Shown one piece after another: positions 5,835 through 53,966 of a DNA stretch of 64,000 bases. The notes below the pieces were generated by a model that worked only from the letters and a program-made list of their open reading frames with translations, was not told the origin of the DNA and ran no database searches. Numbering within the stretch: position 1 is the stretch's first letter; every line of letters begins with the position of its first letter. A program made the translations under genes and the position numbers. The stretch covers positions 1-64,000 of the IMG/VR virus record IMGVR_UViG_3300042549_005931; one strand, 5' to 3'.

Positions 5835-7190
5835 ATGAAGAAAAAGATATTACTATTATCTGACGACTTAAGGTCAACATCGGGTATTGCTACAATGTCA
5901 AAGGAATTTGTGTTGGGTACGGTGGATAAATACGATTGGGTCCAATTGGGTGCCATGATAAAACATCAAGATATTGGTAAAACCATTGACGTTAGTGAGG
6001 ATGTAAGAAATAAAACGGGGGTAAAAGATGCAAATGTAAAATTATATCCCAATAATGGTTATGGTGATATATTCACATTGAGGAGATTAATTGATATTGA
6101 AAAACCAGACGCCATTCTTCACTTTACAGACCCACACTATTGGCAATGGTTATACGATAATGAACAAGAAATTAGACAAAAATGTCCAATTTTGTTCTAT
6201 CATATATGGGATAATTTGCCTGACCCAAAATACAATAGAGATTATTATGAAAGTTGTGATTGGTTGGGTTGTATTTCCAAACAAACATACGGTATTGTTC
6301 ATCGTGTAGGTAAAATGAATAATGAATCAACATATAAACCATTAGAGGATTGGCAAATAAGTTATGTACCTCACGGTATTAATCAAAATGTTTTCAAACC
6401 AATTAAAAAAGTATCGGAAGATATTAGTAACTTTGTATATGGTGATAAAAAATATGATTTCATTTTGTTCTATAACAATCGAAACATTAGAAGAAAACAA
6501 CCAAGTGATGTAATCGCGTCATATAAATTATTCTGTGATAGTTTACCTAAGGACAAATCAAGTAAGTGTTTGTTATTAATGCACACACAACCAGTTGATG
6601 AGAATGGTACGGATTTAATTGCTGTAAAGAATAGTATATGTCCTGAATATGATGTGAAATTCACTAACTTTAAGTTGGAAGCCGATAAATTAAATGAGTT
6701 ATATAATTTAGTCGATTGTACAATTAATATTGCAAACAACGAGGGGTTTGGATTGGCTACGGCAGAGAGTATTATGACCGGCACACCTATTATTGTTAAT
6801 GTAACCGGTGGATTACAAGACCAATGTGGGTTTGATTTTAGTGCAGATGATTATATTTCAATTGGTTCTTTACATAATAAAGGTGAGAGGTCACAAACAA
6901 AACATGGTGAGTGGGTGATACCTGTATGGTCATCATCACAGAACTTAAATGGTTCAGTACTTACCCCATACATCTATGAAGATAGAGTTAATCTACAGGA
7001 TGTGGCAGACGCTATTAATAAAATGTATGAGTTGGGTAACAAGAAAAGAAAAGCTAATGGACAAAAAGGAAGAGAATGGGCAATTAAAAACCTATCTTCC
7101 AAAGTAATGTGTGATTCAATGTCTGAAGGTATTGATACAGCATTAAAGAACTATAAACCAAAGAGTAAATTTAAATTATACAAATTATAA
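5835..7190 (+). CDS. GT4-like (GT-B) glycosyltransferase
   Basis: VPHGIN, NRNIRRKQ, NEGFGLATAES (ExFG..E) motif. Confidence 0.9.
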   Translation: MKKKILLLSDDLRSTSGIATMSKEFVLGTVDKYDWVQLGAMIKHQDIGKTIDVSEDVRNKTGVKDANVKLYPNNGYGDIFTLRRLIDIEKPDAILHFTDPHYWQWLYDNEQEIRQKCPILFYHIWDNLPDPKYNRDYYESCDWLGCISKQTYGIVHRVGKMNNESTYKPLEDWQISYVPHGINQNVFKPIKKVSEDISNFVYGDKKYDFILFYNNRNIRRKQPSDVIASYKLFCDSLPKDKSSKCLLLMHTQPVDENGTDLIAVKNSICPEYDVKFTNFKLEADKLNELYNLVDCTINIANNEGFGLATAESIMTGTPIIVNVTGGLQDQCGFDFSADDYISIGSLHNKGERSQTKHGEWVIPVWSSSQNLNGSVLTPYIYEDRVNLQDVADAINKMYELGNKKRKANGQKGREWAIKNLSSKVMCDSMSEGIDTALKNYKPKSKFKLYKL

Positions 7191-8437
7191 TGAATAGACC
7201 AATATTATTATTTAGAGGACCGGTTGAAACACGGTCGGGATATGGAAGTCATGCAAGGGATGTGTTAGAATCTTTATATAAAATGGATATGTTCGATATT
7301 AGTATTGATAGTTGTAATTGGGGTGTCACTCCAATGAATGCGTTGGAAGATGGTAATGAATTTCATCAATGGATTAAAGAACACAAAGTTGCATCAATAA
7401 GTGGACAACCTGACATTTATGTGTCGGTTACAATATCAAATGAATTCAGAAGAATTGGTAAATTTAATGTTGGTGTTACTGCAGGCGTTGAGACTACAGT
7501 TGTGGGTAAAGATTTAATTGACGGGTGCAATGAGATGGATTTAATTATTGTTCCATCTACATTTACAAGAGACTCATATTACAACACCGTTTATAATGAA
7601 ACTGAACAATCAACCAATAGATTGATTAAACAATTTAGAGTTAATAAAACTATTGAAGTTTTATTTGAAGGTATTAATACAAACATATATAATGATGTTG
7701 TAGACGAATCTTTTGATTTGGATATTAAAGAGGATTTTGCGTTTCTATTTGTTGGTCATTGGTTAAAAGGTGACCTTGGTCAAGATAGAAAGGATGTGGG
7801 AATGTTAATTAAAACATTTGTTGAAACATATAAAGATGTTGAGGATAAACCCGCATTGGTATTAAAAACATCATCAGGTGCGTTTTCTGTTAAAGATAGA
7901 GAACTAATTGCTCAAAAAATTAAACACATCGTTGGTGGTTCAAATGTACCCGTTTATCTTTTGTATGGTGATTTAAGTGATAATGAGATGAATTCATTAT
8001 ATAATCACCCTAAAATTAAATCTATGATTAGTTTAACCAAGGGTGAAGGTTTTGGTAGACCATTATTGGAATTCTCAATGACCGGTAAACCTATCATTGC
8101 TTCCAATTGGTCGGGACATAAAGATTTTTTACCAATGGATAAGGCTATTATGATTGGTGGTTCATTAAATGATGTTCATGATAGTGCGGTTGATAAGTTC
8201 ATATTAAAGGGTGCCAAATGGTTTACTGCAAACTATGGTGAGGCTGCTTCCATTTTAAAATTGGTGAGGGATGAATATGATACCTTTAAAACAAAGTCAG
8301 AAGAATTAAAAGAGATTAATAGACGTGATTTTAGTTTGGAAATGATGACTAAGAAGTTTGAAACTATCTTGACACCATATATTCAAAGACCTGAACGTGT
8401 TGACCTAAAATTACCGAAGTTAAATAAGATTGGATAA
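7190..8437 (+). CDS. GT4-like (GT-B) glycosyltransferase
   Basis: SGYGSHAR, GEGFGRPLLEF, ASNWSGHKDF. Confidence 0.9.
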   Translation: MNRPILLFRGPVETRSGYGSHARDVLESLYKMDMFDISIDSCNWGVTPMNALEDGNEFHQWIKEHKVASISGQPDIYVSVTISNEFRRIGKFNVGVTAGVETTVVGKDLIDGCNEMDLIIVPSTFTRDSYYNTVYNETEQSTNRLIKQFRVNKTIEVLFEGINTNIYNDVVDESFDLDIKEDFAFLFVGHWLKGDLGQDRKDVGMLIKTFVETYKDVEDKPALVLKTSSGAFSVKDRELIAQKIKHIVGGSNVPVYLLYGDLSDNEMNSLYNHPKIKSMISLTKGEGFGRPLLEFSMTGKPIIASNWSGHKDFLPMDKAIMIGGSLNDVHDSAVDKFILKGAKWFTANYGEAASILKLVRDEYDTFKTKSEELKEINRRDFSLEMMTKKFETILTPYIQRPERVDLKLPKLNKIG

Positions 8438-8685
8438 TGAAAGAATTCAAATTTTTTAAAGAGAACGATACTCGATTATGTTTGGAGAATAGTTTTTTGA
8501 CCTTTCCTTCCCAAATAAGATATGATAACGTTGAGTTTTGTTTTCAATTTGATGATGATGAACCCACCGTTTTTGCAAACGGTACCGAAGAAATTAGTAT
8601 TATAATAGAACCAACGAATGGTGGTAATATCACATTTACTACCAATGATAAACAGTTTACAATATTTGCAAGAGAAAGACAATGA
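8437..8685 (+). CDS. Hypothetical protein starting MKEFKFFK
   Basis: Translationally coupled to neighbours. Confidence 0.6.
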   Translation: MKEFKFFKENDTRLCLENSFLTFPSQIRYDNVEFCFQFDDDEPTVFANGTEEISIIIEPTNGGNITFTTNDKQFTIFARERQ

Positions 8686-9068
8686 GAGAGTTTAAATTTT
8701 TCCGTGGTATTATAAGTCCACGTAAAATAAGAGTTACTTGGTCTCCTGAAATGGAACAAGATTTACAATCACACCATGGTATTGACGTTGAATCTGAATT
8801 AGCTTCATTGTTATCTGAAGAAATTGCTAGAGAAGTTGACAACGAAATATTAAGAAATCTAACAGGAACATTTCCATTTCCATTAACAGGAACCGGAACA
8901 ATAACTACTAATGGTGGTTACGCATTGACGACAACAAACACAGGTACTGCTAATTACACCACATTAACTGCAACAAACATCGCTAATACCAATTATACTA
9001 CAACAGCATCTGATAATTTACGTTACTTAAATCATTATATTAATATGGAGGGAGGTAATCGTGCATAG
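8682..9068 (+). CDS. Small protein containing a T4 Gp23 major-capsid-like fragment
   Basis: RKIRVTWSPEMEQDLQSHHGIDVESELASLLSEEIAREVDNEILRNL resembles the Gp23 core RxLKAxYSxELAQDLxAxHGxDAxAELxxILxxEIxxEINRE. Confidence 0.7.
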   Translation: MREFKFFRGIISPRKIRVTWSPEMEQDLQSHHGIDVESELASLLSEEIAREVDNEILRNLTGTFPFPLTGTGTITTNGGYALTTTNTGTANYTTLTATNIANTNYTTTASDNLRYLNHYINMEGGNRA

Positions 9069-9154
9069 ATGTGATTGGCATATATGGCAACCAGAAGGAT
9101 GGGAATTCTGTTGGAGATGTGAAGAATTAACTAGAGAACATAACAAAAAAAAAT

Positions 9155-9775
9155 ATGAAAATAAGTTTCGCAATAACAGTTTGCAACGAGTTGGAGGAAA
9201 TCAAGAAGTTGGTTCCGTTCTTACTGGAAAACAAGAGAGTTCAGGACGAGATAGTAGTTCTTTATGACAATAAGAATGGTAATCCTGAGGTGTTAGATTT
9301 CTTATTACCTTATAACAAATTACCAAATGTCCAAACATGGAGAGGGTTTGATTTTGAGGATAACTTTGCAGATTGGAAGAACAAACTAAATGAATACTGC
9401 ACAGGAGATTACATCGTTCAAATCGACGCTGATGAAATGATTAGTAAGTACATGATTCAAAATATCAATGTTATTATTGGTATGAATCCTGATGTTGATT
9501 TATATTATCTACCAAGAATTAATACGGTTGATGGTTTAACTCCCGAACATATTGATAAATGGAAGTGGAGTATTGATGAAAAAGGGTGGGTTAATTTTCC
9601 GGATTATCAAGGAAGAGTTTATAAATCTGATTTAAAATGGTCAGGTAAGGTTCATGAAAGTATTATCGGGTCTAAAAAGTATTCACTTTTACCTGAAGAT
9701 TTTGTATATTGCATTCAACATCATAAAACAATTGAACGTCAAGAAAAACAAAATAATTACTATAATACACTATGA
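9155..9775 (+). CDS. GT2-like glycosyltransferase
   Basis: ISFAITVCNE, IDADE (DxD), FPDYQGR, KVHE. Confidence 0.85.
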   Translation: MKISFAITVCNELEEIKKLVPFLLENKRVQDEIVVLYDNKNGNPEVLDFLLPYNKLPNVQTWRGFDFEDNFADWKNKLNEYCTGDYIVQIDADEMISKYMIQNINVIIGMNPDVDLYYLPRINTVDGLTPEHIDKWKWSIDEKGWVNFPDYQGRVYKSDLKWSGKVHESIIGSKKYSLLPEDFVYCIQHHKTIERQEKQNNYYNTL

Positions 9776-10359
9776 GTAAGATAGAATTTATAATCCCAAC
9801 CTATAATCGACCCGATTTATTAATGTGTACAATCAACTCGATTGTTGCACAAAGAAGTGATAAATGGAAAATACATGTAGTTGCCGATTGTCCACCTGAA
9901 GGTACATTAGATAAGATAATGAAATATTTTGAGGGTGATGAGAGGATTAAATTTACAATATTACCCGAAAGATATAATGATTGGGGACATACACCAAGAA
10001 ATTACGGTATGGAACATGCAACGGAAGATTGGGTGGTTATGACAGGTGAGGATAACTATTACGTGCCAGTGTTTGTTGACCATTTTTTAGGTGCAGTTAG
10101 TGGTAAGCGAAATGTTCATTTTGTTTTTTGTAATATGGTACATAATTGGACCAATTTTCAATATTATGCAATTGATTGTTCACCAAAAAAAGATGAAATT
10201 GATATTGGTAATTTTATGGTTAGAAGAAAATTTGGTAATAAAATTAAATTAAATGTAACAAGGGCGGCCGCCGATGGGGAATATGTTGAGGAGTATTTAA
10301 AACAATATCCTATGGGTGTTACTTTAAAAATTAATAAAATATTATACGTACACAATTAA
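9772..10359 (+). CDS. GT2-like glycosyltransferase
   Basis: IIPTYNRP, WGHTPRN, GEDNYY, C-terminal YVHN. Confidence 0.85.
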   Translation: MSKIEFIIPTYNRPDLLMCTINSIVAQRSDKWKIHVVADCPPEGTLDKIMKYFEGDERIKFTILPERYNDWGHTPRNYGMEHATEDWVVMTGEDNYYVPVFVDHFLGAVSGKRNVHFVFCNMVHNWTNFQYYAIDCSPKKDEIDIGNFMVRRKFGNKIKLNVTRAAADGEYVEEYLKQYPMGVTLKINKILYVHN

Positions 10360-10411
10360 TATGATTAAAATTACAGTTACAACTAAATAACTTTTATAAA
10401 AAAAAATTAAA

Positions 10412-11593
10412 ATGAAAAAAGAGATACCGTTATTTAAGGTTTTTATGGCAAACACCGCCGCAGATAAAGTTGCTAAAGTATTAAACAGTGGATTCATCGG
10501 TCAAGGACCTGTTGTAGATGAATTCGAAAATACCCTTAGTCAATATTTTCAACATCCTTACATTTCAACATTAAACGCAGCAACATCTGCCGAACATTTG
10601 GCATTACATTTAATTAAAAAACCATTCACATTCACAAAGGCGGATGGATATGGTATTAGAGAAAATGTTTGGGATGGTATGAAAGATGGTGATGAGGTTT
10701 TGACAACAGCATTAACATGTACAGCAACAAACTGGCCAATACTTGCAAATAACTTCAAGATTAAATGGGTTGATATTGACCCTAAAACTTTGAATATGGA
10801 TTTGGATGATTTGGAAAGAAAAATCGGTCCTAAAACAAGAGCCATTATGGTCGTTCATTGGGGTGGGTATCCGGTAGATTTGGATAGACTTAGACAAATT
10901 CAAGAGAAGTCATTACGTATGTACGGTTTCAAACCAGCAGTTATTGAAGATTGTGCACACGCAATGGGTAGTAAGTATAAAGGTAAATTGATTGGTACAC
11001 ATGGTAACATATGTACATTCTCATTACAGGCAATTAAACACATTACATCAGTTGATGGTGGGTTATTATTCTTACCTCATGAAGAACTAAACAGACGAGC
11101 TCGTTTATTGAGATGGTATGGTATCGATAGAGATTCACCAAGAAAAGATTTTAGATGTGAAGCTGACATTGAAGAGTGGGGTTTTAAATTCCATATGAAT
11201 GATGTTAATGCGGCCATTGGTGTAGAAAATTTCAAACACGTAGATGAAATTGTTGGTAAACATAAATCAAACGCTAAGTACTATGATGATAATTTAAAGT
11301 TTGTATCAGGTGTAACTTTATTAGAAAGAAATCCAGATATGGAAAGTGCCTTTTGGATTTATTCATTATTAGTTGAAAGAAAAGGTGACTTCATGAAATA
11401 TATGAAAGAATGTGGAATTGCTGTTTCACAAGTTCATGAAAGAAATGATATTCATACTTGCGTAAAAGACTATCGTGCGATGTTGCCTAACTTAGATAGA
11501 ACCATCGGTAGTGTTATCTCAATTCCAATTGGTTGGTGGGTAACAGAAGAAGATAGAAAATATATTGTAGATTGTATTAAAAAAGGTTGGTAA
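10412..11593 (+). CDS. DegT/DnrJ/EryC1/StrS PLP-dependent sugar aminotransferase
   Basis: GPVVDEFE, VHWGG, IEDCAHAMG, FSLQAIKHIT (PLP Lys), DGG. Confidence 0.93.
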   Translation: MKKEIPLFKVFMANTAADKVAKVLNSGFIGQGPVVDEFENTLSQYFQHPYISTLNAATSAEHLALHLIKKPFTFTKADGYGIRENVWDGMKDGDEVLTTALTCTATNWPILANNFKIKWVDIDPKTLNMDLDDLERKIGPKTRAIMVVHWGGYPVDLDRLRQIQEKSLRMYGFKPAVIEDCAHAMGSKYKGKLIGTHGNICTFSLQAIKHITSVDGGLLFLPHEELNRRARLLRWYGIDRDSPRKDFRCEADIEEWGFKFHMNDVNAAIGVENFKHVDEIVGKHKSNAKYYDDNLKFVSGVTLLERNPDMESAFWIYSLLVERKGDFMKYMKECGIAVSQVHERNDIHTCVKDYRAMLPNLDRTIGSVISIPIGWWVTEEDRKYIVDCIKKGW

Positions 11594-12558
11594 TGGAGAG
11601 AATAATTGATGACTCGTTTTTAAAATCTGATGTAACGGAGTTTGCATTAGGTTATGATAAAGTTAAGAATCATACTTGGTATGATAACTTAAATTATATG
11701 GTTGATTTATCTAAAAAATATTTCAATGAGGATAACTTCATTATGGATTATTCTTGTGGTACCGGCATTTTTTGTGAGAGATTATTAAAATCTACAATTG
11801 ATTGTCCAAGAATTTTAATGATGGACTCCTCACCAAAATATTTGAAGTTATCTCATGATAAATTCGGTAGAAATTATAAGTTTCATTTTAGGGTTATTAA
11901 CTATCTTAAAAATGAGGGTAGGTTACAAACAATATCCGAAACTTTAGGTGAAGATTATAAAGAACTATTAGATGGGATTGTTTGTACAAACGCAATTCAT
12001 TTATACCCAACAATCGATGATACAATTAAATCTTGGAATGATATTTTAGTTAAGGGTGGTAAATTATTAATAAATTCGGGTAACATATACAACCCATTAA
12101 TGGGTGAAGAAACGAAGTTGATTGACCAGACAGTAGAGGAGATTTCTAAAATGTCATATGACATTGTAAAAGGTGATTCTAAATATTCCAAATATGTTGA
12201 TTTAATTGACAATTTCGACTATATTGAAAAACATAATGTACTTAGAGATAAATACTTTTTACCTATTCGACCGATTAATTTCTACACAGATGAATTAATT
12301 AAAAATGGGTTTAAAATTGTGGAAGTTAAAACTATTGATGTCGATGCTAAAGTTGACGAGTGGTTTGATTTCTTAAAAGTATATCACGAAGGTATTATTG
12401 GTTGGATTGGTGGTTCTAAAAAAATTACCGGTGTTGAACCAAGTGAAGATGAAGTTAATGATAGAGTCGAAATTATAAAATTGGCGCTAACAAAAATGTT
12501 TAATAACCAAAACGATTTTAAAGCGTGTTGGAACTATATAATTTGTGAAAAAATATAA
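11587..12558 (+). CDS. Class I SAM-dependent methyltransferase
   Basis: MDYSCGTG, NAIHL, LVKGGKLLI; likely ATG at 11593. Confidence 0.8.
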   Translation: MVMERIIDDSFLKSDVTEFALGYDKVKNHTWYDNLNYMVDLSKKYFNEDNFIMDYSCGTGIFCERLLKSTIDCPRILMMDSSPKYLKLSHDKFGRNYKFHFRVINYLKNEGRLQTISETLGEDYKELLDGIVCTNAIHLYPTIDDTIKSWNDILVKGGKLLINSGNIYNPLMGEETKLIDQTVEEISKMSYDIVKGDSKYSKYVDLIDNFDYIEKHNVLRDKYFLPIRPINFYTDELIKNGFKIVEVKTIDVDAKVDEWFDFLKVYHEGIIGWIGGSKKITGVEPSEDEVNDRVEIIKLALTKMFNNQNDFKACWNYIICEKI

Positions 12559-13237
12559 AAACATTATGAATCATTGGGATGAGTATTGGGTTAACGTTAA
12601 ATGGAGTCCTTTATTAAAAAATCCGTCTCCTAAGATGTATGGTGGAACAAATTACGAACCATTAGCAACTATTGGTATGACCGCATTTCTTGATGCGGTT
12701 AAAGATAAATTTGTAGAAAATTTTTCAATATTAGATTATGGTTGTGGTGCAGGTATATTGATTAATCCAATAAGTGAAAGACTTGCTAATTTTACATATT
12801 ATGGGTTAGAACCAATAAATGGGGATGGTCCATCAAGAATAGAATTGGGTAAAGAATCTTTTAATGATTCAAGAGTAAAATTTGGATTCATTGAAAGTGA
12901 TTATGATGATGTAATTAAAAATAAATTAGATTGTGTAATTTTAATATCAATTTTTACACATTTAACAATTGAGGACATTTATTTAACGTTAGACAAATTA
13001 ATTAAAGTTTTTGAGGTTAGTCCTAATTCCTCCATTGTTTTTTCTTGTTTTATTTCGAATAAGAGAGTATTGGTAAACCATCTCCCAAATATATGGGAAA
13101 GATTTTACGGTGAAAGTCATATAATGATAGATGATTTAGTAACATATTGCAATAAAAATAATTTAAAATTAATTAAACATATGGATTTTATCGCAGCCGG
13201 GGGATATAATCATCAAATATTTAAAATCGAAAAATAA
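12545..13237 (+). CDS. Class I SAM-dependent methyltransferase
   Basis: ILDYGCGAG, SIFTHL. Confidence 0.85.
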   Translation: MKKYKNIMNHWDEYWVNVKWSPLLKNPSPKMYGGTNYEPLATIGMTAFLDAVKDKFVENFSILDYGCGAGILINPISERLANFTYYGLEPINGDGPSRIELGKESFNDSRVKFGFIESDYDDVIKNKLDCVILISIFTHLTIEDIYLTLDKLIKVFEVSPNSSIVFSCFISNKRVLVNHLPNIWERFYGESHIMIDDLVTYCNKNNLKLIKHMDFIAAGGYNHQIFKIEK

Positions 13238-13803
13238 TGGTAGGTTGGAACGAAGAAATTAAAAAAGAATTGGGTTACTGTGGTGACAATGTCTTTATAG
13301 GTCATAATGTTGTTTTTACCAATCCTAAAAATGTTATATTAGGTGATAACGTTAGAATTGACCCGTTTTGTTTGATAACAACGGCATTAGAAGTTGATAA
13401 ATATACTCAAATATGTTCACACGCAGTTTTAGGTGGTGGAGTACAACATAAAATTACATTAGGTAAATGGAATTTTATTGGTTATGGGTCTAAATTATTT
13501 TGTGCATCCGAAGATTATAGCGGTGAGTTTGGTCCCGTAAATGAATATTGGGGTAACAATAAAATTTTTAGAGGTGATATCACTTTTAAAGACTATTCAG
13601 GAATCGCGTCCGATGTAATGGTTTTACCGGGTGTCACATTTCCCGAAGGTTGTACTATTGGTGCTAAAAGTTTTGTTTATTCAAAATCGAAACTAAATGA
13701 ATGGTCAATTTATTTGGGTAACCCATTAGTATTTCATAAAGAAAGAAATAAAGATAATGTGATTAGTTTATCTAATGACCCAAATTTCCTTAAGAATAAA
13801 TGA
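13237..13803 (+). CDS. Left-handed beta-helix sugar acyltransferase (VioB-like)
   Basis: Hexapeptide repeats GDNVFIG/GDNVRID, ASEDYSG, VLPGVT..IGAKS..GNP. Confidence 0.85.
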   Translation: MVGWNEEIKKELGYCGDNVFIGHNVVFTNPKNVILGDNVRIDPFCLITTALEVDKYTQICSHAVLGGGVQHKITLGKWNFIGYGSKLFCASEDYSGEFGPVNEYWGNNKIFRGDITFKDYSGIASDVMVLPGVTFPEGCTIGAKSFVYSKSKLNEWSIYLGNPLVFHKERNKDNVISLSNDPNFLKNK

Positions 13804-14531: not shown

Positions 14532-14545
14532 AAATATTTAATATT

Positions 14546-17724: not shown

Positions 17725-17823
17725 AAAAACTTTTAGTACCGGTGTAAATCTTTGTAAAAAAATAAAAGAAGAAGAGTGTCTTGTAATAAGTGTTAAAACC
17801 TACATTAAAAATTATTTAAGTAA

Positions 17824-20027: not shown

Positions 20028-20042
20028 TGAATAAATTTATAT

Positions 20043-20135: not shown

Positions 20136-20154
20136 TATATTTTTTATTTAATAA

Positions 20155-21935: not shown

Positions 21936-21939
21936 TTAA

Positions 21940-21947: not shown

Positions 21948-21953
21948 GTTTGT

Positions 21954-22067: not shown

Positions 22068-22073
22068 ATTATC

Positions 22074-23744: not shown

Positions 23745-23749
23745 TTTTA

Positions 23750-40946: not shown

Positions 40947-40950
40947 TTTA

Positions 40951-42736: not shown

Positions 42737-42739
42737 AAT

Positions 42740-43381: not shown

Positions 43382-43386
43382 TTTAT

Positions 43387-43950: not shown

Positions 43951-43951
43951 A

Positions 43952-44539: not shown

Positions 44540-44540
44540 A

Positions 44541-45128: not shown

Positions 45129-45138
45129 AACTTTTTTT

Positions 45139-45687: not shown

Positions 45688-47310
45688 TTATTTCAAATAT
45701 ATTAAAAAATCTGCGTGGTCTTGTAATATTTTTAAATTTAATAACATATTTCTTTTAAATTTCTCATCGAAAGTAAAAAAATGTTCTCTACGAACGTCAC
45801 TATTAGTGGCTCCATAAAGTTCAAACGCTCTTTCTCTATTAAATAAATGTAACCCATTAGTTATCGCATAAAAACTAGATACATCATACGCGTCATTAAT
45901 TGTTTTTATAAATTTACGTTCCGGCATAGTAATAGAACATTGTTCTAAGTATTTTTCTATGTTTTCTGTAATTTTATTTTTATCTCTAAATGTTTTCCAA
46001 AATTCAGAATCACTACGTTTTGTTAAATAATGTAGGTAAATAAAATCTTTAGTATCATCGTGAAATTTGTTCACTCTCTCATTATATCTATTAATATAAA
46101 ACTCATTGTTTGAAATAGCACCTAAATTATTGGAGATATACTCATTTAATGATGTAGTGATTGTCCAAATTGATGTTGCTTCTAACGGTTCGATAAAACC
46201 GGAAGACAAACCAATAGCTATACAGTTTTTAATCCACGTTTGTTTGTATCGTCCGGCATCATATGTAAATGGATTACCAAATTCGATATCGTTTCCAAAT
46301 CGTTCTTTGATTTCTTCCTTTGCTTGTTCATCTGAAATAAAATCTGAATCAAACACATAACCACAACCAAATCTACCTTCAACCGGTATCTTCCACATCC
46401 ATCCATATTTTAAAGCAATTGATTCTGTATATGGTGGTACATCATTACTTTCATTAGGGATTACAAATGGGATTGCTCGTTTCATTGGTAAACTATCTGA
46501 ATATGATTCCCATTCACCCTTAAAATGTTTACCGATAATTAATCTATTGAACCCACTACAATCAAACACAAAATTACAAGGTAATTTATCACCCCGTTTA
46601 GTTGTAATTTCTTTTATAGAACCATCATTTTCATTACTTATAATTTCATTGAGTTCGGATTCAACATACCTAACTCCACGGTACATAGCATTCTTTTTTA
46701 AAAACTTGGCCAATAATCTAGCGTCAAAATGCATACCAAAACTAGATAATGAATTAAAATGTGTAATTGGGTTTTGGTCTTTATTATCTATATTTACAGA
46801 TGGAATAAAGTTAACTAAATTTCTTTTTGATGCATTAGCACTAAATGAAATATCATCCAATGATTCTCCTTTAGCAATTGAATTTAAAACTAAAGTAGAA
46901 ATCCCACCACCATTTGTTGCATCATTAGTTTCGAATGAATTTACATTTGTGTTTTCAAAAAATGGGTGAAAATATGACGTATCATCACCATTCCAATCGG
47001 TAAATTTAATACCACTTTTGATTGTTCCTTTCGCATATTTTACAATATCTGAAACGGAAATTCCTACACTGTCCATAAAATGAACAAAATGTGGTGTTGT
47101 TCCTTCACCAGCACCTAAAATACCAATTTCAGCACTTGCCAATACGGTAATATTAATCCATGGATAGTTTTTCTTTAAAAATAAAGCAGTCATCCATCCG
47201 GCAGTTCCACCACCTACAATGACAAAATTGAATTTATTTTCTATAACCTTGTCTAACGATTGGTCCATAGGGCCAATAGGACCGATTGGTCCAATTTGTT
47301 CTTCTTCCAT
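45688..47310 (-). CDS. Flavin-dependent halogenase (tryptophan-halogenase family)
   Basis: GGGTAGW, GAGEGT, TIKSGIKF (catalytic Lys position), DCSGF, GWMWKIP, FIEPLEATSI. Confidence 0.9.
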   Translation of the reverse strand: MEEEQIGPIGPIGPMDQSLDKVIENKFNFVIVGGGTAGWMTALFLKKNYPWINITVLASAEIGILGAGEGTTPHFVHFMDSVGISVSDIVKYAKGTIKSGIKFTDWNGDDTSYFHPFFENTNVNSFETNDATNGGGISTLVLNSIAKGESLDDISFSANASKRNLVNFIPSVNIDNKDQNPITHFNSLSSFGMHFDARLLAKFLKKNAMYRGVRYVESELNEIISNENDGSIKEITTKRGDKLPCNFVFDCSGFNRLIIGKHFKGEWESYSDSLPMKRAIPFVIPNESNDVPPYTESIALKYGWMWKIPVEGRFGCGYVFDSDFISDEQAKEEIKERFGNDIEFGNPFTYDAGRYKQTWIKNCIAIGLSSGFIEPLEATSIWTITTSLNEYISNNLGAISNNEFYINRYNERVNKFHDDTKDFIYLHYLTKRSDSEFWKTFRDKNKITENIEKYLEQCSITMPERKFIKTINDAYDVSSFYAITNGLHLFNRERAFELYGATNSDVRREHFFTFDEKFKRNMLLNLKILQDHADFLIYLK

Positions 47311-48909: not shown

Positions 48910-50445
48910 TTATTGAACATTTTTTATCATCTCAATTAATTTTTTATTATCTATTGATGTTTTCATTGCTTGTTCTACGTTATATCTATATGTTTCCATC
49001 CACATCGAAAAATCACCATCTAATAGGTACGTTTCATTTTCTTTTTTAAATGTTTCTTTTGGTATTAAAGTTTCACAAAGCCCAACACCGACCTCAATAT
49101 AACTAATAATTGGGAATGTATCAACTTTATTTCTATCAAAAATGTTGGGTGTACGTTCTTTCCATGTTTTTAATTTTTTTTCTAATGTTTTAGGTATGAT
49201 TGTACGTTCTTTATACTCTTTCCAAAATGGAGTATCATTTCTTTCAGTTAAATAATGGTAATATAAAAAATCTAAAACACTATCATTAAAATTGTTGAAA
49301 TACTCATTATATTCTTCTCTAAATAAATCAGAGGGATGTGTAAAGTTCATTTTGGTAAGATATGTTAATTGAGATATGGCAATCCATATTGATGTGGCCT
49401 CAATTGGTTCTGTAAATCCCGCACTTAAACCAACAGATATACAATTTTTAACCCACACATCTTTAAATCTACCCGCATTAAAATCAATTACTTTATTAAT
49501 CTTAATTTCTTTACCAACCATTTCTTCCACTTCTTTCTTAGCTTCATCTACACTGATATAATTTTTATCAAAAATATAACCGCAACCATATCTACTTTGT
49601 AAAGGTATTTTCCACATCCAACCATATTTCATGGCAATTGCATCTGTATGTGGTTGTATAATGTCATCTTCTTTATCTAAAAAGAATGGTATCGCACAAT
49701 TGACTTTAAGTTGATTCTCATATGAAATCCACTCACTTTCATAATGCTTACCTATAATTAATCTTTTAAACCCACTACAATCAAAAACAAAATCAATATT
49801 AGATACTGTTATATCCTCAGTTAAGTTGATTGAACATATATTTCCGTTTTTATCATTTTGAATATCTTTTACAGTACCTTCAATTCTTTTTATACCTCTT
49901 TCTTCAGCCTTTTTTCTTAAAAATTTTGCCATTAAAGAAGCATCAAAATGATATGAATAACTTACAACTTTTTTAAATGTGTCATCGATATATAGATAAG
50001 GAGATTTATTATTATATGATAATAAATGAGTGATTAATGTGTTATCTAAATTTTCGTCGTTTGCAATTAAATTTGTAATGGTATAATTTGTTGCGTTAGG
50101 TGTTAAACCAACTGAAATAACATTTCCAGATTTAACAATCTCTTCAAAATTTAATGATTTATCTTCCACACTGAAACCATGCATATATTTTGTACCATCA
50201 CCTCTCCAATTTTCAAAATTAATTCCTAATTTAAATGTGGCATCCGTTTCTTTAATTATTTCTTCTTCACTTATACCCAAGTTATATAGAAAATATGGGA
50301 ATATCGGTACAGAACCTTCACCAGCACCCAAAATACCTATTTCCTCACTTTCAATAAGTGTGATATTATAATCAGGTGCAATTTTGTTTAAATAAAGAGC
50401 GGTTAACCAACCTGCAGTACCACCACCTACTATTACTAATTTCAT
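48910..50445 (-). CDS. Flavin-dependent halogenase (tryptophan-halogenase family)
   Basis: GGGTAGW, GAGEGS, TFKLGINF (catalytic Lys position), DCSGF, GWMWKIP, FTEPIEATSI. Confidence 0.9.
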   Translation of the reverse strand: MKLVIVGGGTAGWLTALYLNKIAPDYNITLIESEEIGILGAGEGSVPIFPYFLYNLGISEEEIIKETDATFKLGINFENWRGDGTKYMHGFSVEDKSLNFEEIVKSGNVISVGLTPNATNYTITNLIANDENLDNTLITHLLSYNNKSPYLYIDDTFKKVVSYSYHFDASLMAKFLRKKAEERGIKRIEGTVKDIQNDKNGNICSINLTEDITVSNIDFVFDCSGFKRLIIGKHYESEWISYENQLKVNCAIPFFLDKEDDIIQPHTDAIAMKYGWMWKIPLQSRYGCGYIFDKNYISVDEAKKEVEEMVGKEIKINKVIDFNAGRFKDVWVKNCISVGLSAGFTEPIEATSIWIAISQLTYLTKMNFTHPSDLFREEYNEYFNNFNDSVLDFLYYHYLTERNDTPFWKEYKERTIIPKTLEKKLKTWKERTPNIFDRNKVDTFPIISYIEVGVGLCETLIPKETFKKENETYLLDGDFSMWMETYRYNVEQAMKTSIDNKKLIEMIKNVQ

Positions 50446-50482: not shown

Positions 50483-50836
50483 TTAAATGGAAGGGGTGTT
50501 AGGTGTTGTTGCAGTGGCCCACGGTAATGGTAAATTATATTTACCAATTAATTGTGATTCACTATCTATATTATTTTGTATTTGGGTTTTAAATTCTTCA
50601 ACATTAAGATTATTTTCCAACCATAATATGATAGTTTCTCGAGTTATCCCTGAATAATTAATAAATGTTCCACTATTTGGTGATGGTAAATCTAATTTAC
50701 CCGAAATAAATAAGTCAACACCATCTTCTCTTGTACCTCTATACACATATGTTATTGCACTAATTACATCATTTAAACCATCTAATGATTTTTTTGGATG
50801 TAAATTCATAATTTCCCATTGATATACCATTTCCAT
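50483..50836 (-). CDS. Putative tail-fibre-associated protein
   Basis: Follows the fibre gene; YQWEI..DVI..I.Y, FINYSGIT..II.W, LPLPW. Confidence 0.55.
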   Translation of the reverse strand: MEMVYQWEIMNLHPKKSLDGLNDVISAITYVYRGTREDGVDLFISGKLDLPSPNSGTFINYSGITRETIILWLENNLNVEEFKTQIQNNIDSESQLIGKYNLPLPWATATTPNTPSI

Positions 50837-50837: not shown

Positions 50838-53800
50838 TTAATCTAAACCTACGTGTTTTTTAATTTTATTTACTTCTTCGGTTAATTCTTTAATTGCCTC
50901 AATTAACAATGGTACAATTTTATCATATTTTACCGTTAAATAGTTTTCACCTGATTTTGATTCCGTTTTCCCATCATCCGTTGTTCCAAAGTCAAACGGC
51001 GCCAAAGTGACAACTTCAGGTAGTACAGATTGTATTTCTTGTGCCGAAACTCCGACTTGTAATTTAGAATCGTTATAACCAAAACTTTTGGCCAAATCAT
51101 TATTAACATAATAGAAACCATTTAATTTGGATACTTTATCCAATGGATTTTCTATCGGTCCTAAATTTTCTTTTAATCTTTCATCTGAATAATACGCAGT
51201 AATATCACTTGTTGCAGCAATTTGATTGGGAACATAAAACGCTTTACCATTATAAACCCTAACCCACGTATTATCTTCCATAAAGATACCACCACCATAT
51301 GTTCCACTAAACCATCCCGAACTACCTTGACTTCTAAACCAGTTTGGTGTATAAACCGTATCAAATGTTGGACCATTGTTGGTATTAACATATTGGTTCA
51401 TGGCAGACGCATAAACGTTTGATGTACCTGAAGGACCTGTTGGCCCTTGAGGACCTGTGTTACCATTAGTACCATTAGTACCTGAAGGTCCTTGTCTACC
51501 TTGTGGACCTACGGGACCTATTGGACCTATCGGTCCTTGTGGACCTGCTCCACCAACGTTACCTGTTGGACCTGTATTTCCTTGATTACCCTGTGGACCA
51601 GCTGGCCCTGTGTTACCTATATTACCCTGTGGACCTACGGGACCTATTGGACCTTGTGGTCCCGTATTTCCATTATTACCCGCAGGTCCTGTATTTCCTT
51701 GATTACCTTGAGGACCAATGTTACCTTGTGGTCCCGTATTTCCATTATTACCCGCAGGTCCTGTATTTCCTTGATTACCTTGTGGCCCGATGTTACCATT
51801 GTTACCAGCAGGTCCCGTATTTCCTTGGTTACCTTGGGGTCCTATGTTACCATTTGTTCCGTTATTACCTGAAGGACCTTGTCTACCTTGCGGACCTACG
51901 GGTCCAATTGGTCCTATATTACCTTGTGGACCTATGTTACCCTGAGGTCCAATTGGTCCAGTGTTTCCTTGATTTCCTTGAGGTCCTGTAGCACCATTGT
52001 TACCATTGTTACCTGCAGGTCCTGTGTTACCTTGATTACCTTGAGGGCCTGTTGGTCCTGTGTTACCCTGATTACCCTGAGCACCATTATTACCATTATT
52101 ACCTGAAGGACCTTGTCTACCTTGAGGGCCTACGGGACCAATTTGGCCAGTATTTCCTTGATTACCCTGTGGACCAGTTGGACCTGTATTTCCTTGGTTA
52201 CCTTGAGCACCGTTGTTACCATTATTACCTGATGGTCCTTGTCTACCTTGAGGGCCTACGGGACCAATTGGGCCAGTATTTCCTTGATTACCTTGAGGAC
52301 CGGTTGGACCTGTATTTCCCTGATTACCTTGTGGGCCAGTTGCACCCGTATTTCCTTGATTACCCTGTGGGCCAGTTGCACCCGTATTTCCTTGATTACC
52401 CTGTGGGCCAGTTGCACCCGTATTTCCTTGATTACCCTGTGGACCTGTAGCACCCGTATTTCCTTGGTTACCTTGGGGTCCTGTTGGTCCTGTATTTCCT
52501 TGGTTACCTTGAGCACCGTTGTTACCATTATTACCTGATGGTCCTTGTCTACCTTGTGGACCGACAGGTCCGATTGGGCCAGTATTTCCCTGATTACCTT
52601 GTGGACCTGTCGGTCCTGTATTTCCTTGGTTACCTTGAGGACCTGTTGGTCCAACATTACCTTGAGAACCCACGTTACCCTGAGCACCAGTATTTCCTTG
52701 ATTTCCTTGTGGACCTAAGTTACCAAATGCACCTTGATTTCCTTGCGGACCTGTTAGTCCTGTATTTCCTTGGTTACCCTGAGGACCTGTTGGTCCGACA
52801 TTACCTTGCGGACCTGTGGCTCCTTGATTACCTTGTGTACCCACATTACCTTGAGGACCAAGATTACCAAACGCACCTTGATTTCCTTGCGGGCCTGTTG
52901 GTCCTGTATTTCCTTGGTTACCCTGAGGACCAGTTGGTCCAACATTACCTTGAGGCCCACTATTTCCTTGATTACCTTGCGGTCCTGATGGACCTGTGTT
53001 TCCTATTGGACCTGTGTTACCCTGATTACCTTGAGGACCTGTTGGTCCTGTGTTACCCTGATTACCTTGTGGACCAGTTGGTCCTGTGTTTCCTTGATTT
53101 CCTTGTGGTCCTATAACACCCTGAGGGCCCGTTGGTCCTTGTGGTCCTGATACATTTGAAGAACCACCAGCAGGACCGGTAGCTCCTTGATTACCTTGAA
53201 AACCTTGAGGACCGGTTGGTCCTGTACCACCTTGATTTCCTTGAAAACCTTGAGGACCAACATTACCATTTAAACCATTATTACCTGCAGGTCCTGTGTT
53301 TCCTTGGTTACCTTGAGGACCGGTTGGTCCTGTTACACCTGTGTTACCCTGATTTCCTTGTGGACCAGTTGGTCCCACGTTACCTTGGGGACCAGTAGCA
53401 CCTTGATTGCCTTGAGTTCCCGCAGGTCCTGTGTTACCTTGATTACCCTGAGGTCCGGTTAAACCAGTATTACCTTGATTACCTTGTGGACCAGTTGGTC
53501 CAACATTACCTTGTGGGCCGACATTTCCTTGATTTCCTTGTGGTCCTGTTAAACCAGTATTTCCTTGATTACCTTGAGCACCTGTTGCACCCACATTACC
53601 CTGATTACCTTGTGGGCCTGTTGGTCCCACGTTACCTTGGGGTCCTGTTGGTCCTTGTGGACCACCCACTAATAAATTTGTGGCAACACCTGCAGCAGTT
53701 TCAGTTAAATCAATATACGCACCTCGAGCGGAACCTCCTTGTTCAAAAATTCTTATTTTATTTTGGTAAGAGTCGATTGTTATACCACTACCTGTAAGTG

Positions 53801-53966
53801 TGGTATTTGTCTCAGGTTTACCTAATAATAATTCTCCACCTTCGTCACCCCCAATTGCGTCTAGTGTTAATTTTCCACCAGCACCACCACCAACCGATAA
53901 AGAACCGGTAATTACAGAATTATTTTTAGCAATGACACCATTGCGTGCCACAAATTCATTTGCCAT
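50838..53966 (-). CDS. Collagen-like fibre protein with C-terminal intramolecular chaperone (peptidase S74)
   Basis: About 250 G-X-Y triplets; WFRSQG..W....YGGGIFM.D.TWVR head motif; YSDERLKEN..GVSAQE..PEVV..YDKIVPLLIEAIKEL. Confidence 0.92.
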   Translation of the reverse strand: MANEFVARNGVIAKNNSVITGSLSVGGGAGGKLTLDAIGGDEGGELLLGKPETNTTLTGSGITIDSYQNKIRIFEQGGSARGAYIDLTETAAGVATNLLVGGPQGPTGPQGNVGPTGPQGNQGNVGATGAQGNQGNTGLTGPQGNQGNVGPQGNVGPTGPQGNQGNTGLTGPQGNQGNTGPAGTQGNQGATGPQGNVGPTGPQGNQGNTGVTGPTGPQGNQGNTGPAGNNGLNGNVGPQGFQGNQGGTGPTGPQGFQGNQGATGPAGGSSNVSGPQGPTGPQGVIGPQGNQGNTGPTGPQGNQGNTGPTGPQGNQGNTGPIGNTGPSGPQGNQGNSGPQGNVGPTGPQGNQGNTGPTGPQGNQGAFGNLGPQGNVGTQGNQGATGPQGNVGPTGPQGNQGNTGLTGPQGNQGAFGNLGPQGNQGNTGAQGNVGSQGNVGPTGPQGNQGNTGPTGPQGNQGNTGPIGPVGPQGRQGPSGNNGNNGAQGNQGNTGPTGPQGNQGNTGATGPQGNQGNTGATGPQGNQGNTGATGPQGNQGNTGATGPQGNQGNTGPTGPQGNQGNTGPIGPVGPQGRQGPSGNNGNNGAQGNQGNTGPTGPQGNQGNTGQIGPVGPQGRQGPSGNNGNNGAQGNQGNTGPTGPQGNQGNTGPAGNNGNNGATGPQGNQGNTGPIGPQGNIGPQGNIGPIGPVGPQGRQGPSGNNGTNGNIGPQGNQGNTGPAGNNGNIGPQGNQGNTGPAGNNGNTGPQGNIGPQGNQGNTGPAGNNGNTGPQGPIGPVGPQGNIGNTGPAGPQGNQGNTGPTGNVGGAGPQGPIGPIGPVGPQGRQGPSGTNGTNGNTGPQGPTGPSGTSNVYASAMNQYVNTNNGPTFDTVYTPNWFRSQGSSGWFSGTYGGGIFMEDNTWVRVYNGKAFYVPNQIAATSDITAYYSDERLKENLGPIENPLDKVSKLNGFYYVNNDLAKSFGYNDSKLQVGVSAQEIQSVLPEVVTLAPFDFGTTDDGKTESKSGENYLTVKYDKIVPLLIEAIKELTEEVNKIKKHVGLD
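51424..53664 (-). repeat. Collagen G-X-Y coding repeat (dominant 36-bp unit encoding GPQGNQGNTGPT/GAT)
   Basis: 9/36-bp periodicity with synonymous variation; one interruption (GGSSNVS) near 53150-53170. Confidence 0.95.

Follow-up and report, generated by a model that had tools for sequence, protein, structure and literature searches.

A gene module kept beside collagen-like tail fibre genes suggests chemical modification of phage collagen by phage enzymes

Introduction

A region of about 48 kb in the genome of a large freshwater phage, rich in sugar-, hydroxylase- and halogenase-type genes, adjoins the gene of a long collagen-like tail fibre and raises the question of what these enzymes modify. 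The window analysed here comprises the 64,000 nucleotides at positions 1 to 64,000 of IMG/VR record IMGVR_UViG_3300042549_005931; the source virus is a distant T4-like jumbo myovirus from lake metagenomes, with a contig of at least 269 kb. The initial annotation proposed a single factory of about 45 kb with which the phage hydroxylates and glycosylates its own fibres. Inspection of the ORFs and their Pfam domains confirms that tailoring genes stand beside an almost uncharged collagen fibre, with fibre genes adjoining on the same strand. The idea of a single factory has to be abandoned, as a carbamoyltransferase cluster and a frame of glycosyltransferase (GT) and amino-sugar genes are each conserved separately, without collagen. 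At least three gene sets, each with its own pattern of conservation (the collagen module described below, the carbamoyltransferase cluster and the GT frame), make up this mosaic region, which forms a hypervariable cargo site between the conserved GT frame on one flank and the 3' end of the tail-fibre block on the other.

The collagen-like fibre and adjoining genes

The fibre ORF (50838..53966, minus strand) encodes 1042 residues with a Pfam Collagen match (E 4e-109) and a C-terminal Peptidase_S74 domain (PF13884, residues 927–986, E 2.7e-12). The protein is ordered as a non-collagen N-terminus of 101 residues, a collagen region of 748 residues, a knob of about 78 residues and the S74 chaperone, before which the Ser-Asp-x-Arg-x-Lys junction is present (...AYYSDERLKEN). 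Tail-fibre PHROG families match with E values down to 1e-169, and the collagen ORF is co-oriented with the tail-fibre PHROG genes. The earlier estimate of some 250 Gly-X-Y triplets without Lys, Asp or Glu agrees with the count: 248 triplets in two runs of 56 and 192 (residues 102–269 and 274–849), interrupted by one four-residue break; the triplets contain five Arg and no Lys, Asp or Glu. The commonest triplets are GPQ (53), GNQ (38), GNT (34) and GPT (20). All 102 prolines occupy the X position and none the Y position, in which Gln occurs 106 times and Thr 68 times. The argument that a chain devoid of charge pairs needs to be modified is weak, since X = Pro with Y = Thr or Gln is usual in bacterial and phage collagens, which are mostly thought to be unmodified (PMC8968730).

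In over 30 related loci a fibre that ends in S74 is followed by a small DUF7936 protein (here 50483..50836, minus strand), which may have an accessory role for the fibre. The Gly-rich PF21722 protein (47865-48860, minus strand) and its 177-residue partner (47327-47860) recur directly downstream of S74 fibres elsewhere and are probably structural. Upstream, a block co-oriented with the collagen ORF (54055..63998, minus strand) contains u83, three LamG-type proteins, a 1369-residue protein, u117, a 723-residue tail-fibre protein and a last LamG protein that extends to 64934 in the genome; a PHROG tail fibre gene lies at 60876-63047.

Gene content of the tailoring region

The number of GTs had been put at about 17, of which 13 are supported and four (13800, 23750, 24446 and 25445) remain candidates. 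Eleven ORFs are assigned by Pfam: GT4-like at 5835 and 7190 (the latter below the curated cut-off), GT2 at 9155, 9772, 16981, 17824, 33859 (borderline), 36646 and 41525, and GT7+LamG at 30881 and 32248; the GT-A proteins at 39915 and 35432, assigned by fold or look-alike evidence, complete the 13. Eight of the nine proposed 2-oxoglutarate (2OG) oxygenases are likewise supported, namely PhyH (14546), DUF6445 (38442, fold confirmed) and six proteins with HxD/E...H (40951, 42230, 42740, 43387, 43952 and 44541); the ninth, 45139, shows the motif only. The three expected methyltransferases (11587, 12545 and 34707), the carbamoyltransferase (22074) and acyl-type enzymes (hexapeptide acyltransferase 13237, FabH-type KAS III 15427 and a weak GNAT 18904) were all recovered, as were both halogenases (45688 and 48910, full-length PF04820 matches with E 1e-104 and 4e-112). 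For the sulfotransferase-like function there were just two pointers: 39356, for which a language model gave a weak lead, and 36198, an APS-kinase-like P-loop protein below curated cut-offs.

The GT frame (5634..18927, plus strand) consists of u65, GT4a, GT4b, u82, an MCP-fragment gene and GT2a through GT2d, and encloses a variable amino-sugar cassette (DegT aminotransferase, two methyltransferases, hexapeptide acyltransferase, PhyH, FabH, SDR and GT2); it is widespread without collagen. The carbamoyltransferase-centred cluster (18904..30884, minus strand) contains a twitch radical SAM protein (29502), u482, an NDP-sugar dehydrogenase (26187), DUF6071, DUF6734, the carbamoyltransferase, u90, u502, u235 and u139, including a Zn-ribbon-like 90-residue protein and one of 502 residues that combines a Hint-like segment with a Cys/Gly-rich tail. 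Many phages carry this cluster, and in none of the 54 large viral contigs in which it recurs is a collagen gene nearby. Next in coordinate order, also on the minus strand, come two paralogous GT7 (β-1,4-galactosyltransferase-like) genes (30881..33672), each fused to a LamG/concanavalin-like domain, and a group (33859..36653) comprising GT2_4 (33859), Methyltransf_24 (34707), the GT-A-fold protein (35432) and the P-loop protein (36198); this methyltransferase and the P-loop protein recur in other collagen-module loci.

Nearer to the fibre, six 2OG-type genes (42230..45681, minus strand: 45139, 44541, 43952, 43387, 42740 and 42230) lie at lower coordinates than two flavin-dependent halogenases (45688..47310 and, of the Trp_halogenase family, 48910..50445, both minus strand); a halogenase shares 45% identity with that of Pelagibacter phage HTVC008M. 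The 2OG array together with 45688-48860 is a mobile cassette, present in three other loci (L056, L105 and L117) at 72–80% amino acid identity and absent from a 96%-identical relative (G001), which has the same fibre and lacks five 2OG paralogs.

A five-gene module

Five genes, all on the minus strand, form a module spanning 36646-42172. The first (36646..38445) encodes a 599-residue protein whose C-terminal half contains a GT2 domain and whose N-terminal half gives only a weak second GT2 match. Its best solved match is the chondroitin polymerase K4CP, to residues 375–608 of which the C-terminal GT2 domain aligns (E 5e-14), and the next is heparosan synthase. The DUF6445 protein (38442..39359) combines an N-terminal β domain with a double-stranded β-helix 2OG oxygenase domain of prolyl-hydroxylase fold, in which H197, D199, H281 and R295 are invariant; the top solved matches of its model (pLDDT 90.5) are PHD2, OGFOD1, HygX and PPHD. 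The third gene, u352 (39915..40973), encodes a glycosyltransferase that is modelled as a GT-A fold (pLDDT 90.6) and is rich in Cys towards its C-terminus; it has no match in 50,697 GenBank phage genomes. It is followed by a P4H-family 2OG oxygenase (40951..41535, PF13640) and a small GT2 of 215 residues (41525..42172). Between the module genes lies a 185-residue protein (39356..39913, minus strand), the weak sulfotransferase-like lead mentioned above, of which few relatives carry a homologue.

The facial triad of the P4H-family oxygenase (H114, D/E116 and H171) is conserved across 15 sequences, as is an Arg, and all paralogs of this family retain HxD/E...H. The enzyme is generic, with 372 matches in GenBank phages, the best of which (58%) adjoins a topoisomerase in a 735-kb phage. 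Canonical collagen P4H of the animal C-P4H type acts on X-Pro-Gly, that is, on proline in the Y position of Gly-X-Y. Kinship and chemistry of this type were considered for 40951 and set aside: its nearest solved relatives are PKHD-type hydroxylases (PiuC and Sbal_3634), and none of the 102 prolines of the fibre is in the Y position. In fold comparisons the oxygenases score only modestly (TM 0.3–0.47), and enzymes that act on small molecules or DNA (HygX, AlkB) are among their matches; the module oxygenases could act on sugars instead of the fibre.

Linkage of the module to collagen genes

A search seeded with u352 yielded 63 viral loci (35–98% identity), which an identity threshold of 80% groups into 22 clusters. 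Counting a collagen-repeat ORF when at least 12 triplets occur within 10 kb of the seed, 19 of the 22 clusters have one, compared with 0 of 19 for the carbamoyltransferase seed (Fisher p = 8e-9); one of the three u352 negatives is a close relative in which the edge of the locus truncates the fibre. With the S74 C-terminus of the fibre as seed, the reverse search found P4H-family 2OG genes beside seven of eight clusters of Pro-containing collagens, two of seven clusters of Pro-poor (GTS)n fibres and none of 13 non-collagen clusters (p = 2e-4). The module lies upstream or downstream of the collagen gene or on the opposite strand, many of its loci adjoin tail sheath/tube homologues of just 31–43% identity, and it is also found in a contig of 61% GC. 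It is kept beside Pro/Gln/Thr-rich, nearly uncharged collagen fibres in about 20 diverged lineages. The module-associated collagens have Pro (27%) and Asn (17%) in X and Gln (44%) and Thr (21%) in Y, charge is rare, and Y-position Pro amounts to 1.7% in 57 of them. Proline is perhaps not the common target, because some module loci (e.g. L131) carry collagens with almost no Pro.

This synteny is suggestive, though not proof, of a chemical modification of collagen by the phages that encode it. We favour, with a probability of roughly 0.55, the reading that u352, the DUF6445 protein, the putative two-domain GT2, the small GT2 and the P4H-family oxygenase are a dedicated tailoring system for the collagen fibre. 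The reading is partly supported, by genomic context and by fold, from which we infer the substrate, the residues, the order of steps and any effects on stability, host range or shielding. The lack of membrane proteins in the island and the precedents described below also speak for it. The original proposal that the phage hydroxylates and glycosylates its own fibres is upheld in part for the five genes, by synteny only, and is unproven for the other 40 kb or so.

Alternative explanations

The enzymes might instead remodel the host surface, making or altering LPS, O-antigen or capsule, for example as a block to superinfection or with changed adsorption as the outcome; such genes are read as cell-surface modifiers in the literature (PMC12801897), and 'LPS / cell-wall modification' islands of large cyanomyoviruses are usually interpreted in this way. 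The content is like that of O-antigen/capsule loci (DegT/PseC-like aminotransferase, hexapeptide acyltransferase, NDP-sugar dehydrogenase, NodU-like carbamoyltransferase, a FabH/FabG-like pair and a K4CP-like GT), a similar island in S-SSM7 (2OG, PhyH, epimerases, UGD, GTs, DUF6445 and carbamoyltransferase) lies away from fibres, and the independence of the carbamoyltransferase cluster from collagen points the same way. Viewed as an O-antigen or capsule cluster, the region has nucleotide-sugar enzymes and the 13 GTs but lacks membrane components: a simple hydropathy scan (19-residue window, Kyte-Doolittle at least 1.6), which is not a dedicated predictor, finds no transmembrane segment in any of its approximately 50 ORFs, so that the island has no export machinery of its own, and no flippase, polymerase, ligase, initiating phosphoglycosyl transferase or ABC exporter is encoded in it. 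Soluble GTs might use host lipid-linked acceptors and host export machinery. Against remodelling, the island sits within the fibre region in the same orientation, and it is with collagen fibre genes that the five-gene module is linked. We regard host-surface remodelling as unlikely, although it is the strongest competitor. Somewhat less likely again is a recombination hot spot that gathers unrelated cassettes, fibre proximity reflecting insertion tolerance only, with such targets as small molecules or peptides tailored by the halogenases, the radical SAM enzyme, the carbamoyltransferase and the Cys-rich proteins. The replacement of cassettes between 96%-identical genomes, the separately conserved gene sets, the relatives in which just three genes separate GT frame and fibre, and the mixture of radical SAM, Zn-ribbon-like and Hint-like proteins in the carbamoyltransferase cluster are all in keeping with this; it leaves unexplained that the module follows collagen genes through rearrangements and unrelated neighbourhoods.

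Glucosylated hydroxymethylcytosine in T4 and other glycosylated phage DNAs are known means of restriction evasion, and the GTs and tailoring enzymes might in the same way decorate the bases of phage DNA. The plus-strand GT frame is back to back with a thymidylate synthase and a DNA methyltransferase, and phage GTs hypermodify DNA (Pyle et al. 2024, as cited in PMC12619734). On the other hand, the sole PF00303 gene of the 269-kb contig, which is 81% complete, is a true thymidylate synthase scoring above the NCBIfam equivalog cut-offs, so that no ThyA-family dCMP/dUMP hydroxymethylase is evident in that contig; the island content is typical of nucleotide-sugar pathways, and the module is linked to collagen genes rather than to replication genes. 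Hypermodification of DNA is accordingly very improbable.

Comparison with known systems

A close analogy to tailoring of the fibre is Mimivirus, which hydroxylates and glycosylates its own collagen by means of L230, a lysyl hydroxylase/glucosyltransferase (PMC8968730), and whose fibrils are glycosylated by enzymes that the virus encodes. Both viruses encode a collagen-like protein, 2OG oxygenase and GT and have no secretory pathway of their own; the present phage has a bacterial host, and the enzymes are compared by described activities. Whereas L230 is a single LH-GT fusion, here there are separate genes for two P4H/PHD-type oxygenases and three GT-A proteins, and hydroxylysine chemistry is excluded because the 748 collagen residues contain no Lys acceptor for L230- or LH3-type hydroxylation. 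Mycobacteriophage virions are glycosylated by phage GTs (Freeman et al. 2023, as cited in PMC12619734). They share with our phage soluble GTs beside structural genes and, on the present proposal, modification of virion proteins in the cytoplasm, and differ in that one or two GTs act on capsid and tail-tube C-termini, compared with a putative collagen fibre target, hydroxylases and a far larger enzyme set here.

Among cellular collagens, BclA of Bacillus is a Thr-rich filament that is O-glycosylated, and the P4H of B. anthracis accepts Pro for hydroxylation in either position, X or Y (PMC8968730). Our fibre, known from its sequence, resembles it as a Thr-rich prokaryotic collagen; BclA is cellular, with (GPT)n repeats, rhamnose/anthrose glycans and gene sets that are unrelated by description. 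S74-ended collagen-like tail fibres of phages and prophages, such as the E. coli O157 prophage collagens (PMC3368898), share Gly-X-Y repeats with a trimerising C-terminus in a fibre cluster but are generally taken as unmodified and are without hydroxylase/GT modules. The 'LPS / cell-wall synthesis and modification' islands of large marine cyanomyoviruses (S-SSM7, P-SSM2 and S-SCSM2R) overlap with the present one in several 2OG oxygenases, PhyH, UDP-sugar dehydrogenase, GTs, methyltransferase, NodU-like carbamoyltransferase, DUF6445 protein and Trp-halogenase homologues, most of which co-occur here as in the annotated S-SSM7 region (2OG, PhyH, UGD, GT, methyltransferase, carbamoyltransferase and DUF6445). 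Auxiliary metabolic genes such as hli and psbA surround those islands, whereas the present one is beside a collagen fibre. Its at least 13 GTs equal or exceed the count of 13 per genome that has been described as possibly the highest for any marine phage (PMC12801897).

Proposed pathway and implications

If the module does tailor the fibre, the host cytoplasm would be the site of the reactions, which would precede or accompany trimerisation. Both oxygenases would hydroxylate side chains on unfolded Gly-X-Y chains, the X-position Pro of GPQ and GPT being the leading candidate, and the (GPQGNQGNTGPT)n repeat would be the putative substrate of oxygenases and GTs. The soluble GT-A enzymes would then add O-linked glycans to the new hydroxyls and/or to Y-position Thr, while the S74 chaperone would trimerise the C-terminus and cleave itself off in a putative self-cleavage. 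By their adjacency, the amino-sugar set, the NDP-sugar dehydrogenase, the carbamoyl- and methyltransferases, the GT7-LamG proteins, the APS-kinase-like protein and the halogenases plausibly supply or decorate sugars or residues of virion proteins. Taken further, and only tentatively, this would amount to a cytoplasmic pathway of extracellular-matrix type in freshwater myoviruses, in which a portable module turns a plain Pro/Gln/Asn/Thr collagen into a hydroxylated, glycan-bearing fibre, to which neighbouring cassettes would attach further groups (amino, acyl, methyl, carbamoyl and halogen). With a chondroitin-synthase-like GT, β4GalT-like enzymes, a sugar dehydrogenase and an APS-kinase-like protein, the product could resemble a proteoglycan.

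Were this pathway to operate, it would provide a ready-made prokaryotic tool kit for the modification of recombinant collagen, and the swapping of cassettes would diversify the virion surface, giving the phage an evolvable 'glycocalyx'.

Collagen fibre genes and a conserved five-gene module

The fibre ORF (50838–53966, minus strand), the only collagen ORF of the whole contig, encodes 1042 residues arranged as a 101-residue N-terminal part, a collagen region, a short knob and a Peptidase_S74 intramolecular chaperone. The collagen region comprises 248 Gly-X-Y triplets (residues 102–269 and 274–849) with five Arg and no Lys, Asp or Glu, which bears out the initial annotation of about 250 triplets devoid of these three residues. 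All 102 Pro occupy position X and none position Y, where Gln (106) and Thr (68) prevail. The argument that a fibre without charge pairs must be modified has to be abandoned, because compositions of the Pro/Gln/Thr type are common among prokaryotic collagens (PMC8968730).

Among the loci found via the fibre C-terminal domain, P4H-family 2OG genes occur directly behind Pro-containing collagen fibres, and none was seen behind (GTS)n or non-collagen fibres. Counted over dereplicated clusters in which the sequence extends 4 kb or more downstream, a 2OG gene accompanies the fibre in 7/8 clusters with Pro-containing collagen, 2/7 with Pro-poor collagen and 0/13 with non-collagen fibres (Pro-containing collagen vs. 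the rest, p = 2e-4). Several of these loci, as well as loci found with the 599-residue GT2, have in common a set of five genes, located in the window at 36646–42172 on the minus strand: u352 (a GT-A-fold protein, 39915), a DUF6445 protein (38442), GT2-599 (36646), GT2-215 (41525) and a 2OG oxygenase (40951). The reciprocal search, seeded with an alignment of u352, returned 63 loci of 35–98% identity that form 22 clusters at 80% identity. A collagen-repeat ORF is present in the fetched flank of 19 of these 22 clusters vs. none of 19 in a carbamoyltransferase control (Fisher p = 8e-9), the three negatives being G001, a relative that is 96% identical and in which the edge of the locus truncates the fibre, a contig of 11.6 kb, and L103/L104, where u352 is found with a methyltransferase only. 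Gene order and strand of module and collagen differ from lineage to lineage, and in many loci both adjoin tail sheath/tube homologues (31–43% identity), a neighbourhood unlike that in the genome studied here. The single prokaryotic match to u352 among 185,579 species genomes lies on a contig of 61% G+C binned with a Verrucomicrobiota MAG, on which a collagen-repeat ORF stands beside u352, GT2-215 and a split GT2-599; u352 has no match among 50,697 GenBank phage records.

That this association persists through rearrangement and despite wide differences in base composition argues more strongly than any other finding of the analysis for a functional link between module and collagen. We infer, on well-founded genomic grounds, that the five genes would constitute a collagen-fibre tailoring module, with a probability of roughly 0.55. 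The idea that the phage hydroxylates and glycosylates its own fibres is partly supported, by synteny with collagen genes, as far as the module is concerned; extended to the entire 48 kb island as serving the fibre or the virion surface, it is based on adjacency and is possible at a lower probability. The linkage between module and collagen is new here, and a search of the full-text literature found no description of a comparable phage collagen hydroxylase/glycosyltransferase system.

Several other features of the fibre loci were observed. Directly 3′ of S74-ended fibre genes, collagenous or otherwise, a DUF7936 gene (50483–50836, minus strand, in the window) is present in more than 30 loci (L012–L050), and its product probably serves as an accessory of the fibre or in its assembly. 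A second fibre class (loci L009–L048, e.g. L017:2309–10495) consists of proteins of 2200–2900 residues with 130–190 GTS/GSS triplets and no Pro, which have the same S74 end and are without accompanying 2OG genes. In some lineages the DUF6445 oxygenase is fused to an extra domain within a protein of about 570 residues (L062:12242–13954 and L064:11748–13454), and these fusions adjoin a tandem series of three or four genes for Gln-rich collagen fibres.

Module proteins and possible chemistry

PDB sequence searches gave no match for ORFs 35432, 38442 and 39915. The u352 model (pLDDT 90.6) has a GT-A fold matching SpsA, TarS/TarP and K4CP, and its Atlas cluster carries GT2. That of the DUF6445 protein (pLDDT 90.5) shows an N-terminal β domain followed by a double-stranded β-helix, for which the best solved matches are PHD2 (HIF prolyl hydroxylase), OGFOD1, HygX and Pseudomonas PPHD, with a Foldseek probability of 1.0 but TM scores of 0.3–0.47. 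All 28 DUF6445 sequences compared keep H197, D199, H281 and R295. Profile comparison with the P4H-family alignment gave a low probability and aligned the distal His strand alone; it was the structure model that settled the fold. ORF 40951 is a PF13640 (P4H-family) protein that comes closest, among solved sequences, to PKHD-type hydroxylases, and HxD/E...H is kept in all six P4H-family paralogs. GT2-599 matches the E. coli K4 chondroitin polymerase best and heparosan synthase next. Outside the module, two paralogous proteins (30881–33672, minus strand) each consist of a GT7 fused to one LamG domain. Animal β-1,4-galactosyltransferases belong to the GT7 family, and the best solved matches of both enzymes (30881 and 32248) are β4GalT7 and β4GalT1 (E 6e-30); BLAST detected no similarity between their LamG domains and the LamG proteins of the fibre block. 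By analogy, GT2-599, the GT7-LamG enzymes, the sugar dehydrogenase and the APS-kinase-like protein bear a resemblance, as a set, to proteoglycan-building enzymes.

The fibre sequence sets limits on the reaction. Since its Pro is never at Y, it rules out the canonical reaction of collagen P4H, and hydroxylysine chemistry has no Lys acceptor in the collagen region. Hydroxylation of Pro at X is known for a B. anthracis enzyme (PMC8968730). Module-associated collagens have Pro (27%) and Asn (17%) at X and Gln (44%) and Thr (21%) at Y; a few are nearly Pro-free, so Gln, Asn or Thr are possible oxygenase targets, and sugars might be alternative substrates. The P4H-family gene itself is generic, with 372 GenBank phage matches, the best of which adjoins a topoisomerase. 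Two tandem HxE-type 2OG genes that share about 50% identity with 43387 and 43952 are also found among small genes at 208259–209387 (plus strand) of the genome, where neither the island nor any collagen gene is near.

Enzyme content and mosaic organization of the island

Pfam supports 11 glycosyltransferase ORFs, 8 2OG oxygenases (PhyH and DUF6445 included), 3 class-I methyltransferases, a NodU/CmcH-type carbamoyltransferase, a hexapeptide acyltransferase, a FabH-type KAS III, an SDR, a DegT aminotransferase, an NDP-sugar dehydrogenase, a radical SAM protein (named twitch-domain radical SAM by NCBIfam, above cut-off) and two Trp-halogenase-family enzymes. Evidence other than Pfam adds two GT-A proteins, u352 and ORF 35432, the latter matching GT8/TOD1/GT6-like models at TM about 0.65. 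These counts make the inventory of the initial annotation essentially right: methyltransferases, carbamoyltransferase, acyltransferase and both halogenases stand as described, 13 of about 17 glycosyltransferases are verified, and eight of nine 2OG oxygenases have Pfam support, the ninth (45139) being recognizable by its HxD...H pattern only. For the sulfotransferase-like enzymes we obtained nothing firmer than a weak lead for 39356 and an APS-kinase-like protein below curated cut-offs. PHROG and relaxed Pfam searches with ten ORFs of no known family yielded nothing usable.

Comparison with related loci shows the island to be a mosaic. In G001 (80.7 kb, flanks of 96% nucleotide identity), window positions 42174–48910, containing five 2OG genes, ORF 45139, a halogenase, a 177-residue gene and a Gly-rich gene, are cleanly replaced by a different 6.5-kb cassette (G001 11538–18056; L004/L097) with two further halogenase paralogs and unassigned genes; G001 retains the fibre as well as the genes of 30742–42174. 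The replaced cassette recurs in L056, L105 and L117 at 72–80% protein identity, behind quite different fibres. The carbamoyltransferase-seeded cluster (18904–30884, minus strand) comprises the carbamoyltransferase, an APS-kinase-like protein, u502, u90, u235, a 2OG oxygenase, u482, the radical SAM protein, DegT and the sugar dehydrogenase, often with a halogenase; among contigs of at least 15 kb it was found in 54, none of which has a collagen-repeat ORF within 10 kb (0/54). The conserved glycosyltransferase frame, searched with its second GT4 gene, was found in 41 contigs in the order ThyA and DNA methyltransferase (opposite strand), u65, GT4a, GT4b, u82, capsid-fragment gene, GT2a, variable sugar cassette and GT2d, and some of them have just three genes between GT2d and a converging S74 collagen fibre. 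Cassette swap, independent carbamoyltransferase cluster and conserved frame together indicate that 18904–50838 is cargo accumulated at a variable site between this frame and the fibre block.

Within the carbamoyltransferase cluster (loci L161–L240), the 502-residue u502 (20155–21663) has an apparent Hint/intein-like segment followed by a 45-residue Cys/Gly-rich tail, and the 90-residue u90 (21663–21935) a CxxC...CxxCGC pattern; a peptide-tailoring role of the cluster is conceivable. The capsid-fragment ORF of the frame (8682–9068, plus strand, 128 residues) is 58% identical over 50 residues to residues 339–388 of the phage's own major capsid protein, and its start, MREFKFF, resembles that of the preceding ORF (8437–8685, plus strand), MKEFKFF. 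Homologues of 72–104 residues lie between GT4b and GT2a in 19/41 related loci, so this is a conserved gene and not debris; an inserted Thr/Asn-rich stretch is unique to the copy described here.

Phage identity and promoter motif

The window, which makes up the first 64 kb of its source contig (IMG/VR, 269,133 bp, estimated completeness 81%), has a G+C content of about 0.30, except for 0.47 in the collagen gene. The major capsid protein of the contig is of gp23 type, with best GenBank matches of just 30–44% identity in Flavobacterium phage immuto, Microcystis phage Mel-JY01, Rhodothermus phage RM378 and a 484-kb uncultured phage, and sheath, portal, protease and terminase are also encoded. These features point to a distant T4-like jumbo myovirus and rule out a classical cyanomyovirus. 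Numerous metagenomes of lake water and freshwater, collected in several studies, contain near-identical DNA; a near-identity search against GenBank phages gave no match. The thymidylate synthase (1901–3073, minus strand) has 390 residues, about 120 more than usual, with an insertion between the conserved halves, and still scores above equivalog cut-offs.

Over the whole genome the 8-mer TATTTATA, as (A/G)TATTTATA, precedes about 35 start codons by 4–40 nt in the orientation of the gene. In the window it lies at 5439(+), 5619(−), 21940(−), 36188(−), 48888(−) and 63118(−), and all of these sites but 5619 stand before island sub-operons. Taken as its reverse complement, the motif is the T4 late promoter box TATAAATA; it resembles a promoter of general use in the phage, with leaders that are very short. 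Since it stands before replication genes, those of DNA polymerase and helicase, and equally before the structural genes and those of portal, sheath, protease and terminase, it was rejected as a marker of late expression. Between 35000 and 54500, sigma-70 promoter-like sites are at chance level and every terminator-like site lies inside an ORF.

Alternative acceptors

Large marine cyanomyoviruses and Pelagibacter phage HTVC008M have glycosyltransferase, 2OG, carbamoyltransferase and halogenase repertoires similar to that of the island, and such repertoires are usually interpreted as host cell-surface modification genes (PMC12801897). The same paper gives 13 glycosyltransferases per genome as possibly the maximum in a marine phage; at least 13 are found here within a single island. 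A hydrophobicity scan found no transmembrane-like segment in any island ORF, and the island thus has no flippase, polymerase, initiating transferase or exporter of a self-contained LPS/capsule pathway. Its enzymes are cytoplasmic, and proteins, nucleotide sugars, DNA and host lipid-linked intermediates are all conceivable as acceptors. Were DNA the acceptor, the island enzymes would glycosylate the bases of the phage genome; the sole ThyA-family gene is a true thymidylate synthase, so that glycosylated hydroxymethyl bases are not indicated in this contig, itself 81% complete.

Implications

Hydroxylation and glycosylation of collagen are regarded as eukaryotic, with Mimivirus as the viral case; to our knowledge prokaryotic examples are limited to a few bacteria, and phage virion glycosylation has been demonstrated so far for mycobacteriophage capsids and tail tubes only. 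If the five genes do tailor the fibre, they would provide soluble enzymes of the bacterial cytoplasm that might hydroxylate and glycosylate recombinant collagens, and part of the puzzling glycosyltransferase/2OG islands of large aquatic phages would acquire a concrete, testable role. Many uncultured aquatic phages would then chemically edit their receptor-binding fibres by means of a conserved, virus-restricted module, which could alter host range, particle stability and recognition.
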